Shown piece by piece: positions 3,001 to 28,711 of a stretch of 64,000 nucleotides of DNA. Each line of letters starts with the position of its first letter. The first letter of the stretch is position 1. The notes under the pieces were generated by a model that ran no database searches, had not been told where the DNA came from, and saw only the letters and a program-made list of their open reading frames with translations. The DNA comes from Monocercomonoides exilis PA203. Taxonomy: Eukaryota > Protista > Preaxostyla. The stretch covers positions 62,001 through 126,000 of the forward strand of contig LSRY02000033.1 in NCBI GenBank assembly GCA_001643675.2. The letters run 5' to 3'. Made by a program: the position numbers and the translations under genes.

Positions 3001-6000
3001 CTTCCATTCCCTTTCAATCTTTCTCGATTCTGTTTCTGTATCCTTCTGCTTCTTTTTGATGTGCATTAATTTTGTGCTTGTCTTCAGCATCTTTTTGAGA
3101 GAATCGTTCTTCTTTTTCTTCTTCTTTTTTTCTGTCTCTTTTGCTCGAAGATCAATTTTGTGGAACTCCATCTTTTTCGGCCAGCCATTCAAAATCAGCG
3201 CTTTTGGCATCAAATTGATGGGCATTCCAATTCCATTCAAAATCAGCAGTTTATTCTGACCTTTGCCTTTCATCAGATTCTCAAATAGAGAAATAGAGTT
3301 CTTCTCTTTTTCTTTGCTTTCCTCATCCTCTTCTTCATCCTCACCATCATCGTCTTTATCTTCACTATCAACTTCGCTTTCTTCTTCTTCTCTTTCTTCG
3401 TCATCATCAGACGTTTCATCCTTCTCTTTGTCTGACTTTTCTTTGTCACTTAAAAGCCCAATTCTTCCATTTACTTCTTTCTTTTGTGCTATCAATCTGT
3501 TTCTGTTTGGAAGCAAACGTTTTCTCTCTTGTTTTTCTTTTGCTATTGTAATTCGTTCACTTGCAAGTTCTGTGTCTGCATTCATATTGTACCTTTCCTT
3601 TCCTTCAGCAAGCCCTCTGCTTTGAGTTATTTCGCTTTTATCTTCTGAGCTTTTCTTTTCTTTCCTCAGCTTCAGAGAAAGAATTGTCTTTCTTTTTTCT
3701 TTTCCCTTTGTCCTATCTTCTTCTTCTTCATCTTCTTTCTTCATCAGATAGGCACTTCCTCCTATCAATGCAACACTTTCATCTTCGTTCTTAATCTTTT
3801 GTCTTTCAGATTTCCTTTTCTCCACTTTTGAGTTTGCAGTTTCTGCTGTTTTCGATTTATTTTCGCTTTCTCTTTCATTCATCCTCTTTGCCAAAATCTC
3901 AAACAGAATCTTAAGCTCATTTTCCAATTCTTGTTCCATGCTGTTCTTATGTTTCTCTTTCCCGCTTTTCCTCTCATCTTCTTCTTTTATGCTCTTCTCA
4001 TACAAACTCTCCAGAAGATTCTTCACCTCAACTATTCTTCGCCTCATGCTCATGTTGCTGAATTCATTCGCATTTCTTCTGTTCAAATGCTCAGACACTC
4101 CTCCTTCTTCATCATTCGATTCTTCTTCTTCATTTGCATTTTTCGTTCCTGCTTTGTTTTTCCTGTTGTTTCTGCGCTCCTTCTCCTCTATCTCGTCTGT
4201 TTCCATTGCTTTGCTACCTTCACTGAGCGATCTCACTTCTTTCATCCATCTTCTCATCTTCTTATTGTCTCCTGCTGGACTTTCAGGTACATTTTTCTCG
4301 TTTCTCTTTCTTTCCATCTCTGATATTGCTTTTGATGGTGGCATCTTCTGTTTTGGTGATCCCCTCAAAAGCATCGGCTTAATCTGCTCTTTATTTCTCC
4401 TCGAAGCTGTTTGCGGGCTTTCGTTTTTAGTTCCAGTTGTGTTTTGTGGCTGGGCAAGACGAGGCAGCCTCAGTCTTATCAGATGTGTTGGGATGCGCAG
4501 AATGGAGCGATGTGCAGAAGAAGAAGGAGATTGATGCGGACTTCGTGTCTGAGCTGAACGAGACAGAGATGCATTCCCTCTCATCTGCTGTGGAGAAGGC
4601 AAAGCCCTCTTTTGTTTGGCAGATGCTAAAGCTGACTTGTCAGAAGAAGATATCTCATTCTTGTTTCTCTCATTTGATGAGGTTGAATAAGAGCGCAGAC
4701 GAGGCGATGATGATGGCATTGGCGAACGCTGAGGTCTGACTGATGCCATTTTTGATTCGTTGTTATCGATCATTCCATGTTCAATTTCCATTCCTCTTTC
4801 ATTCTCTTCTTTCATCCTTCGCGAAGACTGACGAGTGTTGCGTGAAGGAGATTGCGATGTAATGTCTGCCTCTAATGATTGCTGTGCAGATGAAGAAAGT
4901 CCTGTCTGTGAAAAACGAGGTGGTGAATGGTTGCTTGAAACAGAAGCAGCAGCAGAAAGAGAAGGAGGAGAAGGAGAAGAAGCAAAACGGAATCTCGATG
5001 TGGCTGGTGTGCTTGAAGGGGTGTCTCTTCCTTTGCGTATTGGTGGCGATAGAGTCATCAATTGATTTCGACTGAGTTTTGCTGAGAAGAGCGAAGATGC
5101 CTTCAACTGAGACTGGCGAAGGAGCTGTGAATAGGAAAGGCCAGGAGAAGAAGCAGGGCGAGCTGCTGGGTGAGTGCGTGAGGGTGTCAATGAAGGAGAG
5201 CGCAGATGGGGGCTTGTCTGAAGAAGACGAGCATTTACGTGCTGATTGAGACGAAAGCGTGGATGAGAAGGCAGAAGCAGCTGTTGAGGCGAACGAGAAG
5301 GAGAACGAAGGAATGTTGAAGAAATTGTTGGTGTTCGTTCTATTGTGCTACCACGTGTCTTCACATTGCTGCTTTTCAATCGACTCACCAAAGATGAAGA
5401 AGAATAAGAGGAAGAAGGCGAACGGAGCTTGATTCCTGAAACAGATGATGCATTTGTTGTCTTCCTCATGAGTCTAATTCTTCTTGCCTCAGCTGCAATG
5501 GATGAATCAATCGTTCCTGTTGATGAAGAAGAAGATGATGATGATGATGGCATTGAAGAAGACGTCAATGCAGTTGATTCAGAAGATGCTTTTGGTGTCT
5601 GTCTGATCAGTCCTCTCACTCGACGTGCAGCAGAAAGCAGTCGAACTGCGTGTTTTGTGGGTATTTCGATGTCATACGTGACTCTTCCTGGGAAGATGCG
5701 CTGCCTCACAACGATGTTGACTGAACTCGAAAGCAAATCGATTTCATTCATCAGAATTTCTCGTCTTGTTGTCTCGCGATCGAAGAGAAGAGTTTCTGCT
5801 GTCAGAAACGTGGGCCAGGGAGAAGAGGGCTTTTGCCTTTTGCTTCTGCTGGACTTGTAATGGAGTGATGAATAATGTGTGGAATATGATGGATGAGAGA
5901 AGGAGGAGGAGGATGATGATGAGATAAATTCTTTTGAAGATGAAGACTCATTCTTCATCAGTTGAAGCTTTTCTTCTTCTCTATTGTCACTCTGCTTTGA

Positions 6001-8946
6001 CTGCTGCTGTTGATGAAAAGTGAGTGAAGGTATATTTCTGAGTCTGTTTGCAACTAGAGGAGCAGCAGTGATGAACTGAGCAGAAGAAGCCATCAAAAAG
6101 CGAAGAGATGTTGTGAAGTTGTACAAAGAAGGAGAAAACGAGAAGTTGAATGAAGAAGCATTTCTGAAGAGTTTGTGTGGTTTGATCTCGAAAAGAGGAA
6201 CTTCTGAATTCTGAACGAAGAATTGATCATCATCCGAGAATGAGGTTTGATTGGTATCTGTTTCTGATTTGATGTCATTCAATTCTGAAGAAGAAGAAGA
6301 AGAAGAAGAAGAAGAGTTTGACTGATGAGTGTTTATTCTCTCACTTTCTGATTGAGGCGATTGACCGAAATAGATGGCTGGGACATTATTTGGAAGAGCA
6401 GATGCTTTCGTTGATTCTTTTTGTATGCGTGTTGAGATTGAAGATTTGAATGAGGTCACTTCAGAAGAAGAAGCAGAAGAGGAGGAGGAGGAGGAGGAGA
6501 AAGAGGAGGATGAAGATAAAGACAAAGAAGAAGGAAGAAGATTTGACCGAAGATTTGATGAATGGATGTTTGATTCAGAGAGATTTGGAGTTTCAAGTTT
6601 CACAGATGAAATAGTATCTGCAGTGTTTAAGGCTGAAATCTCATCAATTTCCATATGAGAAGCATCTTCATTCACTTTGCTTGATTCAATGGATGTATTT
6701 GTATGTGCATCAGAAAGTACATTTTGATTGTGCTGAGAAGAAGAAGAAGAAGAAGAAGATGATGATGATGATGATGATGAATCAACAGAAGAAATCAAAA
6801 CAGATTCTGTTTGTTGTTCGATTTTTGCTTCATCTTTCTTTTCATTCTCATTCTCATTCTCCCTTTCCATACTCAAAACTGACTCAGAATAATTCTCTTC
6901 GACTGATTTTCGCAGTGTGTCTGATGAATCAGACAGCAAATTTGCATCAAAAAAGAATATTTTTTGGTTTCTGTTGGCAAAACGAGAAGCAAAAAGAGGT
7001 GTTTGTGCAGTGAACAGGTCGAATGGAGTGAAGCTGAAGAGAAGAGCAGCCAATGGAATGGAAGAGCAGAAGGAGAAGAGAGAAGGTGCAATATCAACAG
7101 TTGATGAGGGAAGAGAAGAAGAAATTGAAGAAGAAGTTAATGTTGTTGATGATGATGATGATATTGGTGATGAAAGAGGAGGCATATGCATATCAGATGA
7201 ATGGATGGAGTGATCTTCTGGTTGATTCAAAGCAGAATAAGCAGAAGAATCATCAGAAACATACACAGAAGACATTTGTCTATCATTTGTTTGTGTTGAT
7301 GATGTTGATGACGATGTTGGTGAAGAATTCACTGATAAGTTAGCATTATTCAACTGCTTCATTGAAGAAAGGGATGAATCAGAAATCACTTCTCTTAAAC
7401 TGTTTTGTGAATAAAAGCGATGCTTTTTATTGAAACAGACAGGAGGAATGAGAGAAAGAAGAGTTGAACGCAGTTTCGAAGGCAAAGAAAGAGAGAAGTC
7501 AGTAGGAGGAGTGATGAAAGGAGCCAAATGAAGAGGATGGAGAGGAGAAAGAGAACGAGCTGGGATGATGCCAAATGAATCAGAAGAAGAGGAAGAGGAA
7601 GAGAAGGAAGAGAAGGAAGAGGAAGAAGAAGGAGAAGCAGAAGTTGATTGGCCATTGAGATTCAATGAAGCCAATGAATGTTGTGTTATTGCTAGTTCTT
7701 CTCCATCGTCTCTATCTGATTCTGTCTGTTTGTTTGTGTCATTCGCAATGAAAGTGTCTGAAAATGAAGGAGAAGCAGAAGAAGTCTGAAATACACTGGA
7801 ATTTGATGAAAGTGGTTGATTATGCTGCAGTGAAGGTGTATGAGCCATGATATTAGCAGCATTCACACCAGATTCAACAGAAAATGAGGGAGAAGAAGAA
7901 GAATTGATTTTGTCGAATGACTTAAACAAAACAGGAGAGAGAGTGAAGATTGGAGAGACGATTGGGAAGAGGAAGCGAATGTTCAATGGAAGAAATGGAA
8001 TTTCTTCTGATTTGAATTCGTCTTCTTCATCTTTTTGTGGATTCTTTTCATTCAACGACGATGAACGACGCTTAGATGTTCTCCAATAGCAAGAAGAGGA
8101 AGAGGAAGAAGGAGATAATTGAGAATAACCATTCAATGTATTTGTTTGTGGAGAAAGAGATAAGTTTCCTGAAGACAAAGTAGAAGAAGATGAAGCAGAA
8201 GAAGCAGCAGCAGCAGCTCTTCTTGTGGTGTAGATGCGACGTCTGGCAGATGAGAGATAAGAAGAGCGGACACGTTTGCCGTTTGTCAGATGCTTCATGG
8301 CAGAATTGCATCTGAGGAAGTATTGTGTGGATGATGGAAGGAAAGAAGAGGAGGAAGAAGAAGAAGATGATGATGATGATGATGGTGATAAGGTTGATGA
8401 TGTAGAAGAAGAGGTGATTGTGTTAGGAACAGAAGAGATGGATGGAGAAATAGTTGAATGTGATTTAGTTTTCTTTCCACTCATTTTTTTGGTTGACAAT
8501 TTCTTCTCATCAACATTTGCTTTATCTTCTTGTTTCTCTTTCTCTCCTTCCTTTTCAGTATTTTTGCTTCGATTCTTTAGTTTTGTTGTCTTCTTCTTTG
8601 AATGCGATTGTTTTGGTTTTTCTTTTGTTTGGGTTGAAGTTTGTGGTTCTTTTGACAAGTTGTAAATTGAAGGAGGAGGAAGAGGGAAAGGAAATTGAAG
8701 AGGAAGAGGAAGAGAAGAAGACGCAGAAAGAGGAGAAGAAGAAGAAGAAGCAGGAGAAAGAGAAGAAGCAAGAGAAGGAGATTTAAGAGAAGCAGATTTC
8801 AGAGGAGGAGTAAAGGAAGAAGACAAATAATTGCTTGGAGGGGCATTTTGAGTGAAGATGGGGAACAAAGCAGAATTTGGAGAGATCTGACTGTTTGTGA
8901 GAGAGGAAAGAGGAATTGCTGAATGAGATGGAGAAGAAGAGGAAGG

Positions 8947-8982
<36 letters not shown>

Positions 8983-11900
8983 GGAAGAGGAAGAGGAAGA
9001 GGAAGAGGAAGAGGAAGAGGAAGAAAAAGTATTAGTAGTGGAAGAAGATGGTGAAAAATTGGTAGAAGAAGAAGAAGAAAGAGGAGGAAGAGGAGAAGCG
9101 GAAGAAGAAGAAGGTGGTGATAATGCAACTTGAACAACAACAGACATTGAATTAGAACTTTTTGAAGAAGTTGAAGAAGAAGAAGGAGGAGGAAGAGGAG
9201 GAGGAGAAGGAGATGATGATGATGATGATGACGACGACGACGAAATAGTTGATAAAGTTGAAGAAATTGATGAAGCAGATGAAGAAGCAGATGAAGAAGC
9301 AGATGAAGAAGGAGAAGGAGGAAGAGGAGGAGAAGGAAAAGGAGGAATAGAAAGGGTGGTGAATGTGATGTTAGTGAGTGGAGCGATGGCTGGTGGAGGA
9401 AGAAGCTGAGAGGAAGAAGAAATCGAAAGAGAAGAACGTTTTTGGAGAGAATGAGCAGAGGAAGATGTGTTCAGAGAAAGCGGTTGGAAAGGCAAAGATC
9501 TGTTTTGAATTTGTTCTGAAGAAGATTTCTGTTTCTGCTGCTGTTGATGTTGCTGGGATGAGTCAGCTAACAATGGAGAAGAGGAAGAGAGGGAGAGAGG
9601 GAGGGGCAATGAAGAAGGAGGAGGAGGAGGAAGGGGTGGAGGGAGGAGAGGGGGAAGAGGAGGGGGAGAAGGAGAAGGAGAAGAGAGAGAGGAAGGAGAA
9701 GAAGAAGATTGTGGAGGAGAAGGAGAAGAAGGAGAAAGTTGATGAGGAGAAAGAGAAGAAGAAGAAGAAGAAGAAGAAGAAGAAGAAAGAGAAGGAGACA
9801 ATTTATGGAGCTTCTGATATTGCTGTATTTGTTTCATAAGAAGATATTGCTGCTGAAGCTGAATGGTTAGTTGTTTGCGCTTCGAAAGGCGGTTGTATTT
9901 CTGAGGTGTCTTAAACTTGAAAGAGAAGAGGGAAGAAGGAAGAGAAGGAGCAGAAGGAGAAGAAGAAGAAGAAACATTCGGAAAAGGAGGAAGAGGAAGA
10001 CTTGTTTCATTTTGAAATGGAGCAGAAAATTGAATGTTTGGCAGATTTGGTTGAGAAGAGGAAGAGGAAGAGGAGGAAGATGATGATGGAGATGATGATG
10101 AAGATGAAGCAAAAGATAGAGAAGAAAGAGAAGATGGAGAAGAAGGTGGAAGAGGAGAAGATGTTGAGGAAGGGGAATGAACAAGAGAAGGAGGCAAAGA
10201 AGGAGAAGATGATGAAATAGAAGATGTTGAAATAGAAGAAGAAGAGGAAGAGGTTGGAACTTTCAACGGTGAAAAAGCCAGCCCAGATGTGTTGAGATTA
10301 GAATGAGAGGGAGGAAGAGAAGGAAGATGATTTGTGTGCAAAGGAAGAGGAAGCATAGAAAGAGGAAGAGAAGGAGAAGAGACAGAAATAAGATTGGCAG
10401 AAGAAGGAGAAGAGTATGAGGATGATGGAGTAGAAGATGGAGATAACAAAAGGGAAGAAGGAGAAGAGGAAGAAGAGGACAAAGATAAAGACATAGACAA
10501 AGAAGAAGGAGAAGGAGAAGGAGAAGTGAAAGGATAAGGAAAAGGAGATGGAGATGGCGAAGAAGATGTGCTTGTTTGTTTGTTTGGCGAAGAAGCAGAC
10601 AATTTTTCTGAGTCTTTTTTGATGAACAGACTTGGCTGAAGAGGATTCTGAGGAAAAAGAACTTTTGAAATCGAATGGACAGCAGGAGAAGGAGAAAGAA
10701 CAGGAGAAGACTTGAAAGTGATTGAAGAAGGAGGAGGCAGAGAAGAAGGGAGAGAAAGAGAAGAAGAAGATGAGGAGGAAGAAGAAGAAGAAGAGGAGGA
10801 GGAGGAGGAGGAGGATGAGGATGAGGATGAGGATGAGGATGAGGATGAGGATGAGGATGATGATGATGAGGAGGTTGAAGAGGGTGAAAGGGAAGGGGAA
10901 GAAAAAGAAGGAGGAGAAGTGTTATTAGACAAAGAAGAAGACTGAGAAGGAGTCAATTGAACATCCATTGAATTATTCTGAAGTATTTTTTTGTTTCTTT
11001 TCAATTTTGCCTGTTTGACTGAATTTGGAGAATTTGGATCAGAAATGGGCTCTGAAGGAGAAGAAGAAGGAGAATGAGAAGAAGAAGGAGAAAGTGTTGA
11101 CAATTGAGATATCTGCACTAATGAAGCAGAGGAAGGGAAAGGAAGAGAAGTTATAGTGGAAGAAGGTGGGAGAGGAAGAGGAATTTGTGAAGGAGGTGGC
11201 AAAGGAGGAGATGTAACAGGAACAGAATGAAGGAGAGAATAAGGCAAATACGAAGAGGAGAAAGAAGAAGAACGGCTTGTGCGTGTTTGTTTGATGGATG
11301 AAATGGCTGGGGCAAATTGAGGAGATGAAGGAGATTTTGGTGATGAAGAAAGAAGAGGAGTAGGAGAAAGAGAAAGAGAAGGAGAGGAAGAGTTTGGCGT
11401 GTGCATGATGGATGAAGTTGATTGAGAAGGTGAAAGAGAAGATGAAGAAGATGAAGAAGATGGAGATGAAGATGAAGATGAAGATGAAGATGAAGCAAAC
11501 AAAGAGAAAGGAGGAGAAGAAGAAGATGAACGAGACAGAACAGCTGTGGTATTATTAACAGCAGGGAGCAGCGTTCTGTCTCTTCTGAGTGGAATGAATG
11601 AAGGAGGAAACTGTGGTGACTGTGGAGTGTCTGAAGGGGTGTCTGAAGGGGTGGGTGTGGATGATGGAGTGGATGATGGAGTGGGTGTGTGTGTCTGTTC
11701 AGGTGTTGTTGCGTGTGACGATGTTAATGTTGATGTCAATGTATTTGTGGATGTGTTTGTGGATGTGGATGTGGTTGTGTTATTTTCCTCCTGTTTTTCT
11801 GTGGTGTCATTCATTCCAGAGGCATTTTCAGATAAAGAAGGAGAAGAAGAAGAAGAAGAAAGAGAAAGAGGCAATTTAAACACGGAATTGGATTGAGATG

Positions 11901-14900
11901 AAGAAATGGAGAAAGTGTCTGATTCTTTTGGTTTCTTTTCATTCTCCTTCATTTCATCTTCTTTGCTCATTGAAATGTTGCTGCTCTGAGATTTATCCGT
12001 TTTCACTCTTATTTCAATTGATGGAAACGGATTTGTTGTGCTTGATGTGTTCAAATTCAACGATGAAATCACCTCAGATGGCACAGGAATGACAATATTT
12101 GACTTTGTTGCTGCTTTTTCAGAAGTGTGTTTTACTAACATTTTCAATGCATTTGCATTCGGAGAAATAGAAATCGGAGAATTAGATGATTTTATTGATT
12201 CAACAGCAGTCATAGCCGTTGGGTTAGGCATCTTCTGTGCTTGGTTGATTGATTTGAGTGGGTCATTTGATAATGTTGTTGTGTTTGTACTCAAAATTGG
12301 CTTGGGAAAAGCAGAAACAGAAGAAATTGACGGAGAAATAGAAGAAGAAAGAGAAGGAGAAATAGCAGAAATGGGAGAAAGGGAAGGAGGGAAAGAAGAC
12401 TGTTCTTCATTCAAAAGAGGGCGTGATGCAGCCAAAGGAGCAAACGAGTCTTTTAAATTCTCTCTTTCCTTTGTTGGTGGAGTTGATGGAATGTTGAATG
12501 GATTGAGTGTCAGAGGAACAGATATGCTGAAAGGAATAAGCTTTGCATTCGAACTCGAAAATCCTGTTTTCACTTCATTTGAAGAAGGAGAAATACTTCT
12601 GATGCTTCTGTTATTATAATTGTTCGTGTTGTTCATGCTGTTGTTGAAGCTTTTGAGCGGTTGAGATTGTGTTTCTGTTCCATTCAATGGAAGAGAAGAA
12701 GAAGAAGAAGAAGAAGGAAGATATGAATTGCTGCTTGGCTGAGTGGAAGCGGCTAAAACATTCGGGAAATGAAGAGAATTGTTCAAAAGAGGCAGAGATT
12801 GAGGCATGTTAGTGCTCTTCACTAACACATTTTTGACTTCTTGTTCTTCCGATGAAATGTTGTTTCCTTGTTTGTTTGTCTGTACAACTTTTTCTTCTTC
12901 TTCTTCTTTTATTTTATCTTTGCCTTCCTCTTCATCATCATCATTTTCTTCTTCTTCGTTCTTCTCATCCAATCTCAAACGACTTGTTCTTTGTGGTTTA
13001 ACCCTTTTCTTTCTTTGTGTTTGAATTGAATCATTGGCAGCTGAAGATGATTGGTTCAGTTCTTCAGGAAGTTGGATTGGTGCCTTAGCAGAAGAAGAAG
13101 ACGACGACGATATCAACAATGAAGTCTCATTCATCATTCTTGTTCTGCTTCTTGTTAGTCGCAGATTTGATGTTGGCGAAGAAGATGGTTCGATCAACAT
13201 CACATCTTGTGCATTGCCATCTCTCTGATTAAATTTGTCTTCCTTTTCCATTTCTCTTCTTTCTTTCTCATTTTCATTTTCTTCTTCTTCTTTTTCCATA
13301 GAAGCAGAGCATTCTTCAACATCATTGCCAGAATCTGCTTTGATTTGTTGTGAATTCTCGGCAGGTTGTTCTTCATCCATTGAAGATGTCTCAATCACCA
13401 TTTTGTTATTCTCTTCTCCTTCTGATTGAACTGTCATTGGAGAAGATGTTGATTTAAGCTGTTGTATTGCCTTGTTCTCATCCAATGAAGAATTCTCTTC
13501 TTTTATTTCCTTCATTCGATTGATCATTTCTTCATTCTTTTTCTCAGAAACCTTCTCAGATCCATTCGAAATGGTCAATTTTGATACAAAACTGTCGATT
13601 TCATTGTTGATATTTTGCATTTCTTCTCTTATCATCTGCCTCCATTTCGGTTTCAGCTCATCTTCTTCCTTCATCTTCTCTTGTGTATCTTCTCTTTCCT
13701 CTTTCTCAATCTCTGCAATTGTCGAGTTCAATGCAGCTAATTCATTGTTCCCTTTGTTCTTAATCTTCTTCTTCTTCTTCGCTGTCGTTTTCTCCCTCTC
13801 ACTTTCCAGTTGCATTTCTGCTTCCTTCAGCTCAATCGCTTTCTGAACTTCTTTTCGCCTTATGTTCTCAATCTCTTGTTCCATCACTCTGAACAGCTCT
13901 TCTTCAAAAAGTGAGTCATTCTTCATTTCTCCTTCTCTTCCCATCCCTTTCACCTTATTTGCACACTCTTCATCCATCTTCATCCTCTTCGTTTCTCCTG
14001 TCCTCTTCCTCATCCTCATCTCCATCTCCATCCCCATTCCCATAGCCATTTGTTCTCTCTCTTTCTTCTCCACACAATTCATCAGCATCCTCCTCTGTAC
14101 TATTTCTGCTGCTGCTGCACATGCATCTAACAGAGCATCACAATGCATCACAAATATCGTGTCCATTTTACTTGCATCTTCAAACGGCTCAAACAAATCC
14201 ACAGCAAAGGAAGCATGGTCTTCTAATGCTGACTTCACCACTGATGGCACATTGATCATCTCCTCCATAATCTTCTCTGCTTTCTCACTGTCACTTTTGG
14301 CACTGCTGCTTGTGGTGGTGGAGGTGGTGGTGCTGTTGCTGATGTCACTACTGTCATCACTGATGCTGCTATTGCTGCTGAGAATGCTGCTGTCACTCTC
14401 TTCATTTTTCTCTCTCTTCTCTCTCTTTTCTCTCTTTTCGCTTCTGTCCTTTTTCTCTCTTTTGTTCTTCTCTTCTCTTCTTTTCTTTTCCTTCCGCTGA
14501 GCTTTGGCTTTGGCTTTGGCCTTCTTCTCCATCTCTCTTTTGGATGGCTCAACATTCTCATACGACGAGGATGAAAGAGAGCTCAACTCCTCTTGTTTTG
14601 AAGGAGTGTCAGAAGAAGGTTTCGTTTCAGGCATTTCATCTGGCTCATCTTTTCCTTCCGTTCCAACATCTCCTCTCAATCTCATTGTTCCTGCCAACTT
14701 CTTCTTTTTCTTCCTTCTTTCTGATCTCGATCTGAGAGCATTGCGCGCCTTGTGCATGTTTTCTCTCCGAATCTCTCTCAATCTTTGGCGACTTGTCAAA
14801 TCTGCTTCTGCTTCTGCTTCTGCTTCTGTTTGTGGAAGAGATGAATTAGAATTCTTGTTTGGCTCAATGTCCATCAATTCTGAATTCTCCTCTTTGATTG

Positions 14901-17900
14901 CATTGCCTTCATCTCTTTCCTCTTCATCTTCGCTCCTTCCTCTTTTCTTTTCTTTGCCTGTTTGCTTGTCTCTTGTAACATATCTTTTTCTGCTTTCTTC
15001 TTCTTTCTTTCTTCTCAATCCCATTTTCAGCTGGCGTTGTTCTTTCTTCTGCTTCATCAAATTTTTCAAAATTTCTTTTTCAATCATTTCATTCTTTTGT
15101 GCTTTTATCGATTTCTTCTTCTCCATCTTTCTTTTCTTCTCTCCCATTGCTTCAATGCTGATATCTGATATTCTGTTGTTGCTTTCATTAAAACTGCTCA
15201 TGATTCCCTTTCTGCGCCTTTCTTCACCTTCTTCTTCTCCTTCTTCTCTTTGTTCATTTTCGTCATTGTCTTCTTCATTGTCATCGTCTTCATCATCTTC
15301 CTCGTCACCCTCTTCCAAATCTATTTCCATTTTTCTGTTGTATTTGCCTCTTCCACCTCTTCTGCCATTTCTCTTCCTTCCTCCCCTTCCAATCCTCATC
15401 CATCTCCCAAATGTTCCTCCTCCTTTTTTCTCCACAGCATTTTCTTCTTCCCTCTCACTTTCTCTTTTGTCATCTGCCATCTCTTCTTTCTCTTCCTCCA
15501 ATTTCTTTTCCCCTTCCTTTCTTGTTTCAATCTTTCCATTCTTCTCATTCTCTTCTTCAGCCACTTTCTTCCATGTTGACAGAATTATCACTGCCAATGA
15601 AACAAATGCCTCTTTGCTGCAGCGTTGCAACATGTTGAATGAGAACAGCGATCTCATCAGCTTTGACACTCGATCAAGGCGGATGATGTCTTGTTCCGTC
15701 AGAGCAGTGATTGAAGGAGAGAATGGAGAAAGAGAAGAAAGAGAAGAGGGAGAAAGGGAAGAGGAGAAAGAAGATGAAGGATACAGAGAAAATGATGATG
15801 ATGAAGTTAATAGAGAAGAAGAAGAAGAAGAAGCATCAATATTATGAATAGCCTCATTTGTCTGTGCTGAAGAAAGAGGAGGCGAATGGAATGGCACATC
15901 TGATGGCTGGTTGAACGAAGTATCAGAAAAGTCAGAGACAATTGTGAATGGAAAAGAAGATGATGGTCTGGAGTCTGAAAACGAATCAAGAGAAGAAGAA
16001 GAAGAAGCTGATGAGGAGGAAGATGATAACGAATAGGATGTTGATGGTTCTTGTAATAATGAAGAGGAAGATGAAGAAGCAGAAGATGAAGATGGATAAA
16101 TAAATAAAGAAGAAGAAGATGATGGTGACATTCCATATACATTCGTTCCATCTTCTTCCATTTCTCTTCTCTTTCCTTCCTCCTTCACCTCATGAAATCC
16201 CAATCCAACATTATCCTTCAACCCTCTTTCCATTTCCATATTCATTTCCTTTTTCTCCTCTTTCTCCTTCTCCTTCTCCTTCTCCTTCCCTCTCTTCTCT
16301 GCTTCTGTTGAATAAGCCATCATATCCTCGTGGCAGAAGAATTGCACCAGTCTCATTGTCAATTTACCTCCAAAAGCCAATCTGTTCAACCTCTGCTCTT
16401 CCAAATCAGACACAAAAGATGTCTTCTTTCTGTTCAAAATGAGAGACACACGCTGTTTGTCGAAGGATGTCTGAGGAGACGGAGAAGATGGGAATGAGAT
16501 GAGCTCATCTGCAATTGGGCCTATTTCTGGAAGGGAAGAGGAGGCAGGAGAAGATAAGTTCAAAGAAGGAGAAGATGAAGGAGAAGGAGAAGGAGAAGGA
16601 GAAATAAATGAATAAGAAGAAGAGGAGGAGGAGGAAAAAGATGAAGAAGATGATGAAGATGATGAAGAAGAACTAATCGTTCCTTGCATTGGTGTAACTG
16701 AAGAACTGGAAGATAAGAAAGGCGATTCAGAAGAAGAAGGCGGAAGAGAAGGAGAAGTCTGTGCTGAAGCAGAAAGTGGCTGAGAAAGAGAGAAAGGCGA
16801 AGAAGAGCTTGAAGGCATCATTGGTGTTGCATTCACAGAAGAATTGGATGAAGAGAATCCAGTTGTTGGAGGAGAAGGAGAAGGAGATGGAGAGGAAGAG
16901 GAAGATGGAGAAGGAGATGGTTCGATTAGATTGGAGGAAGAGTCAGAAGGGATACTCCAATCAGAAGGAGATGAAGAAGGTGAAGGTGAAGGAGAAGGAG
17001 AAGGAGAAGTATTTTTAGTATGAAGGGGCAATGAAAATGAAGAGGAAGAAGAAGAAGAAGATGATGATGATGATGATTCAAAATTATTTGTTGATTGGAT
17101 GGGTGCTGCTAAATCCAATGAAGATATTTCATCTTTCACAAGTGAAGAAGAAAGTTGTTGTTTGTCAAATTCAGAAAAATCAGATGAAAAAGAAGAGGAA
17201 GAGGAAGAGGAGGAGGAGAAAAGAGAAGAAGATGATGATGATGAATCAGAAGAATTGAGTGTTGGTGTGAAGGCATCAAGGGTCGATTGAAAATCAGAAA
17301 CAATAAACAAACCCGTCTTCTTTTCTTCAACTTCCTTTTTGTGTTCTGTTTGTCGTTTGCTTTCTTCTTCTTCTTCCTCTTTCTCTTCTTCAACTGCTTT
17401 GTCTTCTTCCTCTTTCTCGTCTATCTTTCCTAAGCTCATTCTCTCTTTCACTTCTTCTTTCTGAGCACTTATTTTTTCTTTCTTCTTATTTGTGGAATCT
17501 TTCATTGAATTCATCCCAACCTTCATTCTCTTCCTTTTGGCAGCTGATGCAAATGAAGTTGCTGAAGAAGAAGAAGAAGAAGAAGAAGACGATTTTCTAA
17601 GTGATGCTTCTTTTGCCTTTGCGCTGGATGACATCAGCATCGACGCAAGTGAATGAGGAGGAAATCTTTCAGCAATAGAAGACTCTGTTTTGTCTTTTCC
17701 TCTTTCTTTCTCTTTCTCTTTCTCCTTTTCTTTCTCATTTTCTTCCTCCAACTCTTCAAACATGTCTTCATCATCATCATCATCATCAACTTCTATCTCT
17801 TCAATCTCTTTTATCTCTTTTATTTCTTTTATTTCAACCAGCTTCGTCATCTGCTTAGGTCTCAGTGTCTTAAACTCTCCTAATGCCTCATTCAGCACAA

Positions 17901-18264
17901 AAAGAGGATGAATGCTGAAGATGGACTTGTCTTCTTCTGCAAATCGGATCTGTTTCTGTTTGATGTGTTCATCTTGTTTGGTTGATGATGAAGGAGAAGA
18001 AGAGGAGGAGGAGGAGGAGGAGGAGGAAATGGAAGAGAAGGAGGAAGATGAGGAAGACGAAGATGAAAAAGAATTTGTTGATTGTGCATTTGGTGTTCCA
18101 ATTGATCCCTGTGTTTTTCTTATTCCATCTTGTTTGATAGAAGAATGATCAACTTCATAATTAGACCTTTTCTGGTTGTCCTTCACGAGATGCGGAGGAA
18201 TCACTTCCAAATCAACAATTTCTCTTTCTTTCTCCTTCTCTTTCTCTTTCTCCTTTTCTCTTTC

Positions 18265-18296
<32 letters not shown>

Positions 18297-21200
18297 CTTC
18301 TACTGCATTTTTGCTTTTCTTTCTGTTCTGCTTCTTTTTCCCTTCCTCTTCTTTCTCCTCTTTGATCACTGTATTGTTCATATTCGGTTTTTCCTCATAT
18401 ATTTCCTCAATAAGTTGACTTTCTTCCTTTTTCTCCTTTTCATCTTGTGCATTCGTGTTATTCTTCTTCTGTGCCCTTCCTCCTCTCTGCTTCTCCTTCA
18501 GCAGCATCTGATAGTTGAGTGTGGGGTCTGGATAGATCAGCGTTTCTGTTCGGAATGTCTGTGTGCAAAGAGAACAGCTGCAAACAGCACAATCTGCATT
18601 GGATGGGAAATGGATGTTGTTTGCAATGATATTTTGAGTGTGATTGTGAGTGTGATTGCATTGATGATGAAGAGAGAGAGAATAATCATTGGAATCAATC
18701 TTATCATTGACAGAATTTCTGTTTTCAATTGTTGCCTTTGAAGTATCATTTACTTGATTTTCTTCATCATTCTCTTTCTTATTTGTGTCTTTTGTGTCTT
18801 CTGCATAATCTGCTACTTTATCCCATTCAAAGCCATCATCATCAAATCCAATAAGCGAAATTCTGATAGAACGAGCAAAAAAAGCACGAGAATTGAATAA
18901 AAGAGGAAGAATATATGGATTGGTGAGGAGAGAGGTAGGAGAAGTGAGCTCAGAATGAATAAAAGAAGAAGAAGAAGAAGAAGGAAATGAAGAAATTCTT
19001 GAATTGGATCTGGAATTGAAGCTGGGGTGTGGATGAGAAGGAGCAAAAGATGATTTTGTGAGGAAGTTTGGAAGAGGATTCGGAAGAAATCGAACTTTTC
19101 GTCTGACTCTTGGAATTCTTTGAAAGTCTTGAAGAGCTTTTAGTTTATCTTCATTGGTCATTTTACGTGAAGAAGAAGATAAAGATGGTGTTTGTGATGG
19201 AGATGAAAGTTGTGAAGAAGAAAGAGAAGGAGAGGAAGAGGAGGATAAAGAGGAGGAAGAGGAAGAAGAGGAAGAAGATGATGATAATGATGAAGGATGA
19301 GTGAATGCTGAATGAAGAGATGATGAAAGTGAATGTGAAGGCAAATCTTTTATCATTCGATCGCTGAAATTGTAAAGAGGAACAGGAGAAGATGGCTGAG
19401 AAGGTGGCAATGCAGAAGAAGCAGAAGAAGAAGTAGAAGAAGAAGAAGAAGAGGAAGAAGAAGAGGAAGAAGAGGTTGATGATGTTGATAATGATGATGA
19501 ATTTTGAGAAGAAGAAGAGGAAGAGGAAGTTGGAGTGGGAGTGGAAGGAGAAGATGGAAAAGAAGGAGCAGAAGGGAATCTGAATAATGGATTAAGTGAT
19601 GAATTTTGCTGAGGATAAGAGAATTGAGGTGAAGATGCATATTTGATAGAAAGATAAGGAGGAAAAGAAGAAGAGGAAGAGGATGATGATGATGATGAAG
19701 GCGAAGATGAAAGTGAAGAAGGTGATTGAACAGAAGGAAAGAAAGGATATGAAGAATTGAACAGAAAAGAAGGGGAAAAGGGAGAAGAAGAGGATGAAGT
19801 TAAGGAAGGGGAAGAAAGAGAAGGAGAATTCAAAGAAGGAGAAGAGATTTCAGAGGGGGGGGCAGGAAGAGGAAGAGGAAGAGAAGAAGATCTGCGCCAG
19901 AAAAGAGAATTGGTGTTTGGATTGAAAGAAGATGAAGAAGAGGAGGAAGAGGAGGAAGATGAATAAGAAAGAGAAGGAGAGAAAATATTTGATGTTTCTT
20001 GATTTGAAGAGGATATTGAAGGTGAATTAGAATTATAAGCTGAATCAGTTGTGCTAATTGTGTTTGATCGAAATAGCATTTTCTTTTCGTTTGTGAGTTT
20101 GTTTTTATCTTCTTCCTCCTCCTCCTCTTCTTCTTCTTCTTCACTTTTATCTTCTCTCTCATCTTCATTGTCTTCTTCATCATCATTCAATATTTCAATG
20201 CCCTTTCTTTTTGTTCTTTTCATCGTCTTCACATTCAGATTACTATCTGCATCAGAAAGAACTCTTGAAATATCATCATCATTCGAATTAGCAATCATAT
20301 TTGTGTTTGTGATTGTGTTTGCGTAATCACTGACATCACTCTCTGAATCAATGCCATCTGTTGAATGCTGTTGACTTATCAGATTGCTCTTCGGATATTC
20401 AATTGGTTTGATCTGTCTCGTTGTGGAAGTTGCAAGTGGAGATGAAACTGCAATTTCTGCTGCTTTTCTTGTGCTTCCCATTCGCACTGGCTTCTTCACA
20501 GGAAGAGGAATCGAATAAGTAGAAGAAGAAGAGATGGAAGAAGAAGAAAGAGAAGACGAAGATGGAAACTTTGGAAATGATGCTATTTCTTTGTTGTTGT
20601 AGTGGGGGAAAGGAAAATGCCTTGTGATATAATCAGCCAATTCCTCTTCCATTTCTGTTGCGTTTCTTTCTGTTTCGCTTTCGGAATTTCTGTTATCAGT
20701 ATTCAAATATGCTCCTTTTCTCCGTTTAGTTGCTCTTCCATTGTTTCCTTCGTCATTTGTGGATGTGGAATCTTCTCTTTGTTTTCTGTGTCTTCCTCGT
20801 TTGTGTGAAACTTTTCCTTTCTTCGAATTGCTTGCTTTATTTCTTTTTGTACGCAATGAAGATGATGAAGAAAGCAAAGATGAAGAAGAAGATAATGATG
20901 ACGATGATGAAGAAGAAGAAGGTGTTGGTGGAGCAGAAGAGATGTATATCTGCTCATACATTTCATTTCCTCTTCCTTCTCCATCAAATACTTGCTCCTT
21001 CTTCTCTTCTTCATCCATCTTTTGATCATCTCTTTCCATCTCTTCCTCTTCCTTGCTCTTTACTTCATTTCCAAGATCCTCTTCTACTTCCCCTTCTGCT
21101 TCTTCCTCTTCCTCTGCTTCTCCTTCCTCTTCGATTTCCTCATTCTCTCCTTCTTCCTTGTGTTCCATTTCTTTCTCTTCATTCATCCGTCTCAAATTGC

Positions 21201-21808
21201 TAGCAGCGTCTGTGCTGAACACAATGCCATGTGCAATGTCTGCTGAATGGCGGAAGAAGAACGTCAAAAGAGGCATCGAAACACTCGGAACACTCAATTT
21301 GTGATTGGGATGGGCAGATGAAGATGATAATGATGAAGATGATAACAATAATTGAAGATCGAGTTTCATCTCTTCCTCTTTCATCTTCATATTCTTTTCC
21401 TTTTCTCTTTCATCAACATCTCCATTTGCATCCAACTTATCCACATACACACACTTCTGCTGCTGGCACTCCCACATTCCTGTTCTTCTCTTCTCATCAT
21501 CATCACTTCCACAGCATGCAACAGCCATTGCATTCATCTGCTGCATCATTGGCTGAATGCACCCGTGAAGGAAGTGACGAGAGCTGAGTGAGAATGTCTG
21601 CACATCTGAATGGGCAGACAAGAGAGGCAGGACAACATCAGTGGAGATGAGAAGAGAGGCAAAGGAAGGAGGATCGAGAGAGGAGAGAAGGCGAGTCACA
21701 GCAGAGGAGAAGTGTGCTGGCAAAGAAGCACCTGTGCGTGAATGGCTGCGATTGGGGGGTGGGAATGAAGGGGAGGCTGATGGTGTGGATGAGGTAACTG
21801 ATGATGAA

Positions 21809-21843
<35 letters not shown>

Positions 21844-24800
21844 AGAAGATATTTTTGAAGGAGAAGAATTGAGCTGGTTGAGTGAAAGTGTTCGGAATGG
21901 GATGATTGCGGGAGAGTATGAAAGAGCTGATGCTTTTGTGGGATCAGGATTTCTGTATATCTTGTCAAATCCTTTGTTCTTGTTCGGAGAATAACGCCAC
22001 GGAGAATTAAACGCAAAAAGTGGAGAGAAAAAATGTGCTGGAGATGATTTCATCTTTTTGTTCGATGTTAATTTGTTTATTCGTTGAGATGGCAAGTTTG
22101 GAGCAGAAGAGAAGTCATCAATGAAAAGAGGGACACTCGATGACCTCAGAGCATATGTCATCTCCTGCTGCAGAAGTGGCTTTGGATTGGATTTTTTGTT
22201 GAATTTGTTCTTTTGAAGGGTTTGAGTGTTGTTGAATGAAGATGTTGAACTTTCTGGTTGTTGAGATTCTGTTGAAGAAGATGTGATGAAGAAGGAAGAA
22301 GAAGAAGAAGATGATGATGATGATGATGATGATGGATTTGAAGATTGAACAGAAGAGGTGTCTGAAATCAAATGAAGAGTGGGATTGATTTCTTCGACAT
22401 TTGTGGGTGTTGATGTTGATGGTGATTGTGATGGTGATGGTGATGTTGATGAGTGTGTGGTTGATTGGTCAAAAGAAAGAATGCTAGCTGAATTACAATC
22501 AGAGTGTTGGTGATGCGTCTTGTGGTGCGAAAAAAGAGAAGTCGAAGAAATGTCTGATGAAAATGAAGATGATGAAAAAAGAGATGAAGATGTTGGCGTG
22601 TGATGCATGCTCAATGATGGAATCGGAGATGAAGATAAGGATGAAGAGGCAACTGTCGAAGCATCAACATTTTCTGTGGAATTTCTTTGGAATTTCGGAG
22701 AAATTGAAGATTTCTCCGGAATTGTACTTGTGCTAACCTCTTCATCTTTTTCCATCTGAGAAGAAATTTCTTGAATTGTGTTAGCTTCAAATGAAGTTCC
22801 TCCATTTTCTGAAATAGATTGAGTTTCTAATTGAGAATTTGCTGTCTTTTCTTCTTCCATTGAGGATGAGTCTGCTGATGTTGCTGTTGATGTTGATGAA
22901 GCCAAATCAACAGAAGTGCCAGTTGAAGGCTCTATCTCCATTGAATCCATTTCATTCTCTAATGTTTGCAAACTTTCGCCTTCTGATTGTTTTGAATGAG
23001 GAGCATCTGAATTAGGCTCATCAGATGTCTTTGATGATTCATCTGTGATTGATGAATGTTTATCATTCAATGACATAGTTGTATTGTCAGATCCATTCGT
23101 GTTTTGAGAAGAATCATGTGGTTCTTTTTCATTCTTCTCAACTTCGGCTGAAGAAGAAGATGTCAATGAAATTGAAGGGAATAATGTTGATGTAACGTCT
23201 TCATCAGTCACTGGATGATTCAATTGCTGTTGTTCTTGTTTCAATACTGTCTGTACTTGTGTTTGTGTTTGTGTTGTGTGAGAGTGTGTTGTTCGTGGCG
23301 GAGGCAGCGAAAACAAAGAAATCGTCTTAGTCTCCTCTGATGTCACTTTCAATTCATTTCCTTTTCCTGCCTCTCTTTCTCTCTCAGCATCTTTCTCTTT
23401 CTCCCCTCCTTTCTCTTTTCCTTTCTCCTTTCCTTGTTCCTTCTCATCTTCCTTCTCACTTGCAGGCAGAATCAGCCCACCCAGCTGTTCCACACAGAAA
23501 GGACACACCCAAAGCTCTCTCGCAATCTCTTCTCTCATCTTCTGCCGCTCCACAAAGCTGTATGAATCATTCGCTGACCCTAACACAGATGGCTGGGCGA
23601 CAAAACCTGAATATGTTGAAGATGATAAAGATGATGATGATGATGATGAAAATAAACTGGATTGGTGAGATTTCATCATCGTTGATGATGAGTTTTCCTT
23701 CCCTTTGCCTTTTTTACCACTTTTGCGAAGATTGTACACAACTCCTTTGCCTTTCCCTCTTCCTTTGCTATTCCCATTCTTCTGCTCCTCTTTCTCTTTC
23801 TCTTTCTTCTCTTCCTCTTCATCCTCACCTCCTCCTCTACCTTCTTCTTCCTCCTCTTCTTTCTTTCCTTCTCCATTCTTCTCCATTCCTTCTCCAGCTG
23901 TCTTCTTCTTCCCTTTCTCATCTGGTGCTTCATCTAACAGCATCTCCAATGGTACAAAAAAAGGCAGAGTGGACACACAACATGGATGATACCAGCGTCC
24001 ACAATGAGAACAGTTCAGAAAGCGCTCAGAAGAGACAGCAGAAGCAATGGCTGAGGAAGAAGAAGTAGAAGAAGAAAAGGCAAGTGCAGAGGAAGAAGGG
24101 AGGAAGGAAGGCCGATCAGCAGATGAAGAAGAGAAAGGAACGAGGAAATCACCATTTGGAAGAAGGGATGAGTTTTGGAAAGAAGAGGAAGGAGAAGAAG
24201 AGGAAGACGAGAAAGGAAGGGGAGAAAAAGAAGGATGATTTGAAGAACAAGAAGATGATGAAGAAGATGATGACGAGCAAACGGCAGCAGCAACAGAATC
24301 CCTGTGAAGAAATGAAAAAGGGCTGACTTGTTCGCTTGGAGCAAACAGAGAAGAAGAATCATAAGGTCTTTTGACGCGATGGCAGAGTGAGCAAATGTGG
24401 AGCATCTCAAACTGCTTGCGGCAGTTCAGAGAGCAGAAAAAGAGTTCCTTTGGATCAGACAGATGGGAAGAGGATGAAGTGGATGAGGATGAAGAAGACG
24501 TAGAAGGAGGAGAAGAAGGAGAAGAAGATAAAGAAGAATTTGAAGCATCGTCGTTTGCAATCATAAACCGTTCAGTCATTTTTTGTACATTTTCTTCTGT
24601 CTTCTTCATCAGCTGCTTGCATTTCTCGCATCCGCAGAAGCCAAACAGCCTTCTTCTCTTCCTCAGAATGAGCTCTCTGTCCTTCTCAGCTGCTGCTCTC
24701 TTCACTTTTTCGATGTTCTTTCTCATCAGATCCTGTCTGGCTGCACACTCAATACAATACACTGAATTACATTGAGCACACACACGCGACCCAACCAGCG

Positions 24801-26777
24801 TGAGGTTTGGAGGGAAAGAGGCATCTGGGGCGAGGTCAGCAAGCAACTGTGAATGGAGTGGGAGAGGTGGAGTGGTTGGCTGGGCGATGATGGAGGAAGG
24901 CGTGGAGAGGCTCTGCATCTTCTCGTGCTCGTCTTTAAAGTACTCGATGAGATCGCTCTTGACTGACGAGTTTTTGAAGAGGAACTTCTCCAGTTTGTGG
25001 AGGAGGGTGTCTTTTGTGGCTGTGGGTGCAAAAAGAGGGGTAGACGAAGATGAGGAAGAGTCGGAAGAAGGGGAAGAGGAAGAAGGGGAAGAGGAAGAAG
25101 GGGAAGATGATGATGTAGGTTTTAAAGAAGATGATGATGAAGTTGAAGTTGAGGAAGAGGAAGAAGATGGAAATGAGTTCTGAGAAGATGTATTGGCAGC
25201 AGTTGTGATAGATGCAACACCAGCTAAAGATGAAGAAGATGATGTTTTTGCAGCTGGCGAATACAAACGACTTTTCGGTCTGCGCATTGCAAATTGACTG
25301 CTCTTTAAGCTTCTGGTACTTTTGTGCTGATCTCTTAAAAGTGATAAAACCTCTCTTTTCTCAATGTGAATTTCTCGTTTCTTTTCTTTTCCTTTCTTCT
25401 CTTCTTTTTCCTCTTTTTCCTCTTTTTCTTCATTTCCATTGGAAATCTTTTCTTTCGTATCTTCAAAGATTCCAACGCTCTCTCTGTTAATCTTTTCATC
25501 TTCAACAACTTTGGCAATTGTTTGTGCCTTGTTTGTTTCTCCAATATATCCATATCCACAATTCAATGGAAATTCCTCTTTCTGTTCTTCCACTGCATTT
25601 CCTTGTATCAATTGTATTTCCATCAATCCTTCCTTTTTCTCTTCTTCTTTATTTTCCCCGCTTTCTTCTTTTTTTGCATTTATCTGTTCAACTTCTCTCT
25701 TTCCTTTCTTCTTCTCGCATTCATCAACAAACCCCATCAGCTGCTTTGCCAGCGATTCAATGCTGCCAAACGGCTGTCTGCTTTCTGATGCCACAATGCG
25801 CATCGCCCGCTCTGTCGTCAATGAACAATCAGCCCCGCTGCAGTGGCATCCGCAGGTGGAGCATGTGAATCCCCCAATCCCATACTCGTTCCGTGCAAAA
25901 AACCGTTTCAGCGGTTCTGTATGCTTCGCATACATATACGCATTAATATCCGCAAGTGATTTCAAGCCAGCAAACCAAGGAGAAATGGATTGTGTGGAAG
26001 GATATAGCAAGAAGAAAAGCTCTAAGAATAAATCCTGCTCTCCTGAGGTCCATTTTTTACTACTATGTAGCGATAGCTCTGGAGCAACTGATATCATTTT
26101 TTTCTTGTGTTTGTTTTCCAGTGGCCTTTGTACTTCTAAAGATATTTTCCGCTTTGCTGTTGGAAATGATCGCGGGCTCACTTGAATAATTCTTTTTCTT
26201 TTCAAAATAAGTTGAGGTAAAAATGGCGCTAATGTAGATCTTCTTGGATGAAATTTAAGTAATCCCTCTGAATATTGCTTTCGAAATACTTCGCTTTCAT
26301 CATCATTTGGTCTTGATCCATTCTTAATTATTGAAAATGGAGGAATTGGAATTGTTTGATTCTGGGCATTTAAAAAAGTAACATGCTCTCCATTCTGTGA
26401 TGGCGTTGATGATATCTGCAGTCTCTCACGAAATACAATTTCTTTTGTTCGAATCTGATTTCGAAGTTCAGAATTATAAAAAAATTCTTGATTTATCAGT
26501 TTCTAATGATAAACAAATAAAAGATTTTACGGATTCAGTTAAATAAAAAATAAGTAATAGATTAAGCGAATAAATTAAAGTCAATAAAGATGAAAACCTG
26601 ATCTTCTTCTTGGTTTGAATGATAGTTCAGTGTTCGTTCAATTGCTTTGTTTTGCTTTCTTTGTTTTAAAAAACGTTCCCAATCACCATCTTCGTTCGGA
26701 ATGTATTTTGTTTCTCCTGAACTTGCGTTCATAAGAGAAATAAACAAATCCCTTTTAATAGATGTGATCTTACCCAT
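1..26777 (-). CDS. Giant (>=8,894 aa, 3'-truncated by the window edge) low-complexity putative chromatin protein with an N-terminal SANT/Myb-like motif and split PHD/Cys zinc fingers; exon 1 26777-26598, intron 26597-26503, exon 2 26502-<1
   Basis: ATG at 26777; donor CAG|GTTTTC after ...NQEEDQ; phase-0 acceptor ATCATTAG|AAA. The minus frame complementary to + triplets starting at positions 1 mod 3 had no stop in the many lines I translated from 26502 to 1. The ORF track lists no minus ORF in that frame, as expected for a frame that never closes. Motifs: KKWTSGEQDLFLELFFLLYPSTQSISPWFAGLKSLADINAYMYAK; FTCSTCGCHC; VCAQCNSVYCIEC; FCGCEKC; FFCSLNCRKQFEMLHICSLC; NCSHCGRWYHPCC; WVCPFC. Confidence 0.9.
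1654..1758 (-). repeat. Coding trinucleotide tract: 35 consecutive Glu/Asp codons in the giant CDS
   Basis: Run of TTC/CTC/ATC triplets on + in the frame of the giant minus ORF. Confidence 0.9.
10759..10872 (-). repeat. Coding microsatellite (GAA/GAG/GAGGAT)n: 38 consecutive Ser codons in the giant CDS
   Basis: AGA/GGA/TGA triplets on + read TCT/TCC/TCA on -. One of many such tracts in this gene. Confidence 0.9.
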
Positions 26778-27176
26778 GGTCAGAATTTCATGAATATTTT
26801 TTCGAAAAGTTATAAACTGATATGTTTAGATATTTAAATGAAATGAAATGATGACAATTGAGCAAACGTTTAAAAGATGTTTAAGATTATTTTATTTTTA
26901 AAATGATTTGAATTTCGCGTCATTTTCAAAATTGTTGTTTATTTGCCGTGTCATTTTTTCTACAATTGTTTTGTTATAACTTCCGAAGAATTTGTTACTC
27001 GCATAGCAAGATTATGAAAAAACGTTGGACTATTTTATTGCTTATTGTGTCGCTCTTTGCAATTCCAGGTTAAAAACACATTTTTTTTTCAAAAATTGAA
27101 TGTTTATTTAATCTTATTTCTTTTTGTTTTAACAATCAACTGCAAACGTGAAATAGGCATGCATGCGGAATGTCCA

Positions 27177-27197
27177 GGCGGGAAATGTGGCGCGAAA
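27177..27197 (-). promoter_or_regulatory. Tandem E2F/DP-like motifs (TTTCGCGCC and TTTCCCGCC on the minus strand) ~400 bp upstream of the giant gene ATG
   Basis: GGCGGGAAA (27177-27185) and GGCGCGAAA (27189-27197) lie in a short GC-richer island within very AT-rich DNA. Both match the TTTSSCGC consensus. Confidence 0.35.
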
Positions 27198-27568
27198 CGT
27201 AGCTCTGGAAAGATGTACAACTCGCGAGCAGGACGAAGATAAAAAGAACGTCTTTGAAAAGCACATTTTTTTGTTAAAGAAATGTTGTTTTTTTGCTCCT
27301 TGTTCAAAGTGAGTGTTTAAATCAAAATAATGAAATGACATCCATTTTTTACAAATTTTTAGTTTATTTTAAAAAATAAGCATGAATTGTTTTATTTGAA
27401 CAAAAAAGAAAAGATTGTTCTAATCTTAAACATCTTTTTAATGAAAAATTATATTTCTTATCAAAATGAATCCCAGTGAATTTTCGTTTAAATCAATACA
27501 AAAAAAGTTTGTCCTGTTGATGGAATGATTAAACTCTGTATCTTTCAAAATCTGCTCAAAAAAGCTTA

Positions 27569-28710: not shown

Positions 28711-28711
<1 letters not shown>

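Follow-up and report, generated by a model that had tools for sequence, protein, structure and literature searches.

Near the N terminus of a giant open reading frame (ORF) in the genome of Monocercomonoides exilis PA203, three short cysteine-containing motifs together resemble the successive parts of a single PHD finger and are separated from each other by long stretches of low-complexity sequence. On balance, we read them as a genuine, very divergent PHD finger of the BPTF/PHF2/TAF3-like kind, with translated low-complexity loop expansions that can loop out of the cross-brace fold. The ORF lies on the minus strand of contig LSRY02000033.1 (C29 herein), of which a stretch of 64,000 nucleotides (C29:62001-126000), referred to as the window, was analyzed; all coordinates without a contig name are positions in this window. 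Genome-wide searches covered 82,301,135 bases in 101 contigs.

The giant ORF runs uninterrupted for 9311 codons, starting at window position 26502, crossing window position 1, and ending at contig position 60570 (C29:60570), such that codon n starts at window position 26502-3(n-1) on the minus strand; its first methionine is codon 136 (window 26097). The product is composed of 22% Ser, 10% Glu, and 8.5% Lys, with only 1% Tyr, 0.6% Cys (53 residues), and 0.2% Trp, and seven of its nine CxxC motifs fall within the N-terminal 1000 amino acids (aa). Across all 9311 codons no Pfam family was found besides the PHD core described below. The gene most likely encodes a protein of ~9,200 residues that is mostly disordered and has a PHD-type finger near its N terminus, and this protein is probably nuclear. 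Elsewhere in the genome, ORFs of 4,000-7,400 codons appeared as low-complexity matches in the own-genome search, indicating that giant low-complexity genes are typical of M. exilis.

The original prediction had placed all eight C4HC3 ligands in order along this DNA, which we confirmed in the single 9311-codon frame. The three motifs, ICSLC (aa 703-707; 24382-24396), NCSHCGRWYHPCC (aa 830-842; 23977-24015), and WVCPFC (aa 998-1003; 23494-23511), supply putative ligands in the order Cys4-His-Cys3, namely, C704, C707, C831, C834, H839, C842, C1000, and C1003 (ligands C1 to C4, H5, and C6 to C8), with C841 as an extra cysteine beside ligand C842. Loop 1, between C2 and C3, has the ~123 Ser-rich residues that had been predicted (123 residues, 40% Ser). 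Loop 3, between C6 and C7, had been put at ~155 residues rich in Glu, Lys, and Ser; it measures 157 residues between the ligands, is also rich in Gly (17% E, 15% S, 14% K, 12% G), and contains no Cys. Both loops are encoded by degenerate trinucleotide repeats. The parts of the proposed finger are arranged as follows.

1..26502, minus strand: window part of the giant ORF (9311 codons in all, ending outside the window), with the PHD core as its sole Pfam family.
24358..24399, minus strand: proposed first zinc knuckle, H-I-C704-S-L-C707-H followed by K-R-P-Y-D (aa 702-715), with putative ligands C1 and C2 and the PYD motif.
24013..24381, minus strand: loop 1 (aa 708-830), the 123 residues between C2 and C3, in degenerate TCT/TCC-type trinucleotide repeats.
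23959..24027, minus strand: PHD core (aa 826-848), beta-1 F-L-N and then C831-x2-C834-G-R-W-Y-H839-P-C-C842-V-S-T-L-P, with putative ligands C3, C4, H5, and C6.
23506..23976, minus strand: loop 3 (aa 843-999), Glu/Lys/Gly/Ser-rich, with a predicted helix at aa ~983-996 directly before C7.
23494..23511, minus strand: last zinc knuckle, W998-V-C1000-P-F-C1003, with putative ligands C7 and C8 and a Trp two residues ahead of C7.

Judged from its sequence, the core is clearly PHD-like. It has the form C-x2-C-x4-H-x2-C with the residues WYH and matched positions 10-29 of the 47 positions in the Pfam PHD profile (PF00628). Four residues separate ligands 4 and 5 (C834-G-R-W-Y-H839) and H839-P-C-C842 forms an H-x2-C, in agreement with PHD fingers, which have 4-5 residues between ligands 4 and 5, compared with 2-3 in RING and 2 in LIM domains (PMC6814106). 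When the core was used to query PDB sequences with phmmer, 39 of the 40 matches were PHD fingers (DPF2/3, KAT6A, KMT2D, BPTF, and others), the best with an E value of 1e-4. The strict core pattern C-x2-C-x2-W-[YF]-H-x2-C occurred at four loci in the 82-Mb genome, compared with none for the reversed control pattern. The Pfam PHD score was 23.2 bits (E value of 7e-5) for the isolated 37-aa core, 17.1 bits on 367 aa, and 14.9 bits in a 1500-aa context, and the gathering threshold of the family is 24 bits. The finger would thus be overlooked by routine annotation because its score in context lies below that threshold, as had been anticipated when it was first proposed that profile searches would miss it.

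The assignment of the distal W-x-C-P-x-C as putative ligands 7 and 8 is strongly supported by sequence comparison. In a local hidden Markov model (HMM) built from nine canonical PHD fingers of M. exilis itself, the core alone scored 12.7 bits and the core joined to the distal knuckle scored 23.4 bits (a gain of 10.7), as one domain spanning profile positions 3-51. None of 2000 controls (1000 with random and 1000 with shuffled flanks) reached 23.4 bits. As substitutes for the distal knuckle in this HMM, six CxxC motifs from outside the finger gave 4.7-10.0 bits, the first knuckle of the finger 6.3 bits, and its core knuckle 13.7 bits. The top three PDB sequence matches of the distal knuckle were to the TAF3 PHD finger (E values of 0.04-0.16). 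WVCPFC is similar to the endings YVCPFC and FICPMC of two canonical paralogues, L026 and L027, and W998 stands two positions ahead of ligand 7, in an alignment column that holds W, Y, or F in all nine of the own-genome PHD fingers.

The role of CSLC as putative ligands 1 and 2 is less certain than that of the distal knuckle. The only PYD of the ORF begins six residues after C707, and paralogue L026 and the solved PHF2 and BPTF fingers likewise have a PYD right behind their first knuckle, in an alignment that runs through L026. Further cysteines lie upstream.

24409..24438, minus strand: F-F-C690-S-L-N-C694-R-K-Q-F, an FCS/HIT/MYND-like 'FCSxxC' half-finger with sub-threshold matches to Pfam zf-HIT and zf-FLZ.
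24619..24780, minus strand: two zinc-knuckle-like Cys clusters, C575-x2-C578-x4-C583-x2-C586 and C623-x-C625-x2-C628, with no Pfam assignment.

FCSLNC scored 15.5 bits with zf-HIT (E value of 0.014; cut-off 24.7) and 14.1 bits with the FCS-type zf-FLZ (E value of 0.033; cut-off 23.4), and it matched only 8-9 residues at the ends of these profiles, falling short of an FCS/HIT/MYND assignment by profile. The likeliest partner of FCSLNC (aa 689-694) is C623-x-C625-x2-C628 (24619-24636), 61 residues upstream across a Ser-rich low-complexity stretch; together, the two could make up a further zinc module, likewise interrupted by low-complexity sequence.

Alignment of aa 697-1012 with the nine canonical own-genome PHD fingers (alignment A1), using MAFFT unguided, laid these fingers over the three pieces such that all eight ligand columns coincided, with C1 and C2 of seven canonical fingers aligned to C704 and C707. 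In the structure prediction that had been proposed as a check, AlphaFold2 joined the motifs when alignment A1 was supplied, with block predicted local distance difference test (pLDDT) values of 81/78, 91/90, and 88 for the three pieces, whereas the inserts stayed below 50; from the single sequence (aa 683-1012) it did not assemble them, with a pLDDT of 42. Foldseek searches with the guided model returned almost solely PHD fingers, with E values close to 1, since a local alignment is unable to span the inserts. By gap-tolerant superposition, the guided model matched 56 of 58 residues of BAZ2B (root-mean-square deviation [rmsd] of 2.9 Å, Z of 4.7) and 48 residues of the ORC1b PHD finger (2.5 Å, Z of 4.8). 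When 48,161 PDB representatives were scanned with this model, PHD fingers filled the top 25 rows, with FYVE and RING domains next, and these top 25 alignments began in the first piece and ended in the third, covering 44-69 residues with rmsd values mostly of 2.3-4.2 Å and Z scores of at most 4.8. Matches to Pfam and PDB sequences and the MAFFT alignment thus uphold the proposed PHD identity, in that the three pieces resemble three parts of one PHD finger. As for the rest of that proposal, a working histone reader, we infer a folded finger that coordinates two zinc ions and recognizes the tail of histone H3.

A survey of the genome with PF00628 yielded 22 candidates, nine of which were canonical PHD fingers; several others were single exons of intron-split fingers, some were RING-H2 domains, and one was of the NFX1 type. 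Long in-frame low-complexity inserts were found in only one of the 22, the locus described here, in a survey that may miss cases because it depends on HMM seeds. The suggestion that fragmented domains of this sort form a hidden class in the lineage therefore found no support.

Paralogous PHD fingers in this genome are themselves interrupted by introns, in the same structural loops that hold the low-complexity inserts of the giant ORF: in L026 and L027, a phase-0 intron (141 and 126 nucleotides; 19% and 21% G+C, respectively) lies between position C2+2 and P[YL]D, and the L024 finger has introns in both variable loops. If the inserts were likewise introns, splicing would take out most of both stretches and leave the mature protein with an ordinary PHD finger of 50-80 aa. 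The inserts proper, however, comprise 321 nucleotides in loop 1 (aa 719-825; G+C content of 0.449) and 378 nucleotides in loop 3 (aa 859-984; G+C content of 0.421), both in frame and free of stops. Neither contains a GTAAGT/GTATGT-type donor site, and both consist of repeated Ser or Glu/Lys codons, as do the other 8,000 residues. Their 45% and 42% G+C is comparable to the 40% of the rest of the ORF, whereas the true introns in the paralogous PHD loops contain stops and M. exilis introns average 119 bp and 27.6% G+C (PMC8767320). RNA-labelled contigs from four runs contained 94-99% of the 31-mers sampled from window 22501-26500, inserts included, and removal of the inserts, which make up about one-fifth of that 4-kb region, would lose ~20% of them; this support is weak because the runs share one study and carry the label 'synthetic metagenome', and it may be that they add no independent support for expression or for an unspliced state, a point that tells against our reading of the inserts. 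By their sequence, the inserts are coding-like, unlike the AT-rich introns of the paralogous fingers, and we regard splicing as a very improbable explanation. Barely credible is a chance arrangement, in which the CxxC pairs on either side of the core have no relation to it. The N-terminal 1000 aa, with seven of the nine CxxC motifs, are relatively Cys-rich, which makes a CxxC within 130 aa upstream unsurprising in itself. Downstream of aa 1003, in contrast, there are two CxxC motifs in 8308 aa, and the number expected per 157 aa is ~0.04 empirically or 0.002 under independence. The 9311-aa ORF contains a single W.C..C and a single PYD, both where a PHD finger predicts them, and the gain in HMM score is specific to the distal knuckle. 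Since Cys and CxxC are scarce and these two motifs are unique and well placed, the arrangement goes beyond chance.

Other results weigh against a genuine finger. From C704 to C1003 the span is 300 residues, in excess of the ~50-80 residues of a compact PHD finger (PMC6814106), and the finger misses the Pfam gathering score of 24 bits in context (14.9 bits) and as an isolated core (23.2 bits). In the MAFFT alignment, the near-invariant Asp after C3 is replaced by Ser. The proximal knuckle contributes 0 bits in the local PHD HMM, its piece has no PDB sequence match, and its spacing is C-x2-C-x5-PYD compared with C-x-C-x2-PYD in the subtype; moreover, the FCS-like F-C-S-L-N-C, 10 residues upstream of C704, could claim C704 and C707 for a C4 site. 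The pieces were not assembled from the single sequence, the Z scores of the structural matches are low as absolute values, and the guided model speaks for feasibility of the geometry only, because its input alignment itself held PHD fingers. No orthologue was found by exhaustive HMMER search of 1.84 billion representatives (query aa 540-1015) or by word searches at lengths of 262-833, 1320-4200, and 4655-14810 aa, no relative was found in JGI metagenome contigs, and a search of the M. exilis genome for a paralogue of the giant protein gave low-complexity matches only; this absence of relatives says little because the public protein sets failed to return even the giant protein itself. 

Part of this evidence would fit a decayed relic, whose pieces descend from a PHD finger that unchecked low-complexity expansion, in a fast-evolving giant protein, has left unable to fold or to bind zinc or histone, and whose ligands persist since little time has elapsed. 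Such decay is favored by the score below the Pfam threshold, the loss of the canonical Asp after C3 and replacement of the aromatic residue before C1 by Ile, the lack of detectable relatives in the searches made, the lack of any other recognizable domain in 9311 aa, and the pieces left unassembled by single-sequence AlphaFold. We nevertheless consider it somewhat unlikely: eight ligands, both hallmark Trp residues, and the PYD have been kept although Cys, Trp, and Tyr make up only 0.6%, 0.2%, and 1% of the protein, the residues flanking the ligands are still PHD-like rather than low-complexity, and no secondary-structure element is invaded by an insert. Rather improbable is a mis-assigned first knuckle, by which C704 and C707 would join C690 and C694 in a separate C4 knuckle of the FCS/HIT/MYND-like kind, leaving the core and WVCPFC as at most a one-zinc half-finger and making the ordered set of eight ligands in part a coincidence. 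C690-x3-C694-x9-C704-x2-C707 is indeed a compact four-Cys cluster, FCSLNC has its sub-threshold zf-HIT and FCS-type matches, and the N-terminal piece went without HMM score or PDB match. However, the sole PYD of the ORF comes after C707, as in loop 1 of BPTF/PHF2-type fingers, C623/C625/C628 are available to partner the FCS half, and both MAFFT and guided AlphaFold put C704 and C707 at C1 and C2 (pLDDT of ~80); without C1 and C2, H839 and C842 would be partnerless.

Under the reading that we favor, a genuine finger with expanded loops, the two naturally variable loops (C2-C3 and C6-C7) would have grown in frame, to 123 and 157 residues, by trinucleotide-repeat slippage. The cross-brace topology places a zinc site at either end of each loop, and the low-complexity stretches can therefore be extruded; they would form disordered loops, with ~55 conserved residues assembling around two zinc ions. 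It is a long shot that the split finger is functional with regulatory disordered loops, a Ser-rich loop 1 that gates the reader according to its phosphorylation and a Glu/Lys-rich loop 3 that either mimics a histone tail within the same molecule or forms condensates, and that similar expansions hide many domains in oxymonad giant ORFs. If the finger folds, the cross-brace zinc-finger scaffold tolerates loop expansion to five times the normal domain length, and chromatin binding becomes the sole functional handle on a 9,000-residue protein of the best-known eukaryote without mitochondria. Domain annotation in the M. exilis genome can fail on low-complexity inserts, and searches with motif pieces combined with gap-tolerant alignment can recover such cases.

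Other parts of the giant protein were also examined. Near its N terminus, aa 136-357 (window 25432-26097, minus strand) contain K-K-W-T-S-G-E-Q-D-L-F, which appears SANT-like; a SANT/ELM2-like lead for this region came from DUF7952/ELM2/Myb clusters of a protein language-model atlas (0.90) and was dropped, with no match in Pfam. Window 25392-25430 encodes a Glu/Lys repeat. Two Cys clusters, C-x2-C-x-C-x-C-x4-C at aa 214-226 (window 25798-25905, minus strand) and C-x2-C-x-C-x2-C after a His-rich stretch at aa 2638-2646 (window 18565-18660, minus strand), are without family assignment. The last ~180 residues look globular, and neither Pfam nor the protein atlas gave a match when the C-terminal 210 aa were searched. 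A Trithorax/MLL-like architecture was rejected, as Pfam found no SET, further PHD, FYRN/FYRC, or CXXC domain in the 9311 codons.

Upstream of the giant gene, window 26500-34000 comprises ~7.5 kb at 22-28% G+C without an ORF of at least 150 aa, an unusually long ORF-poor stretch because the mean intergenic length in M. exilis is 1.9 kb (PMC8767320). Farther along the window, a RING-H2 gene (54440-55345, minus strand; zf-RING_2, E value of 1e-8) matched only profile positions 12-44; it has a single Cys (T-C-V-I-E) at the place of the first knuckle, and its first zinc site may be degenerate or lie in another exon. An ORF of 1022 codons (49698-52766, plus strand) has a weak, C-terminal-only protein kinase match (PK_Tyr_Ser-Thr, E value of 8e-5, positions 160-252).

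Among known systems, the finger is closest in plan to the PHD fingers of the BPTF/PHF2/PHF8/TAF3 type, which are H3K4me3 readers (PF00628). It has the same C4HC3 order, the PYD after the first knuckle, the core of a hydrophobic residue followed by x-C-x2-C-x2-W-[YF]-H-x2-C-V, and a helix followed by W/Y-x-C-P-x-C. It differs in its loops, 123 and 157 residues here compared with ~10-20 in theirs, in having Ser rather than Asp after C3 and Ile703 rather than Tyr or Phe before C1, and in its sub-threshold Pfam score. The aromatic cage of BPTF, which we take to be Y10/Y17/Y23/W32 with the Tyr of PYD corresponding to Y17, was mapped onto the finger through L026 to PHF2 and BPTF: three of the four positions are aromatic (Y714 of the PYD, F828 at C3-3, and W837 at H5-2) and the fourth, directly before C1, is Ile703, and Y714 is parted from beta-1 by the loop 1 insert.

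Within the genome, the canonical BPTF/PHF2-type PHD fingers L026 (contig C41), L027 (contig C54), and L024 (contig C10) share with the finger the strict core and the V/I-C-P-x-C ending. They are interrupted by short AT-rich introns and have normal spacing once spliced, whereas the finger of the giant ORF appears to be interrupted by translated low-complexity sequence. The NFX1-type PHD/RING finger L028 likewise has a cross-brace with a long last loop, and such a loop is typical of the NFX1 family. In L028, however, this loop of ~60 aa before C-P-F-C is not low-complexity, and its ligand pattern and context of NFX1 repeats are unlike those of the giant ORF finger. A literature search of incomplete coverage returned no published PHD finger with inserts of comparable extent and no 'split PHD'.

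The nearest precedent for such inserts is Plasmodium falciparum, in which low-complexity stretches lie mostly between domains, infrequently invade them, and are selected against within core secondary-structure elements; there, they disturb similarity searches and create 'hidden orthologues' (PMC1199594). The oxymonad finger differs in that its inserts are rich in Ser and in Glu/Lys rather than Asn/Lys and in that two of them fall within one 50-residue zinc finger. The principle that low-complexity sequence disturbs similarity searches and hides orthologues is thus already known from Plasmodium, and the finger stands at the extreme of a type of domain disruption that has been described before.

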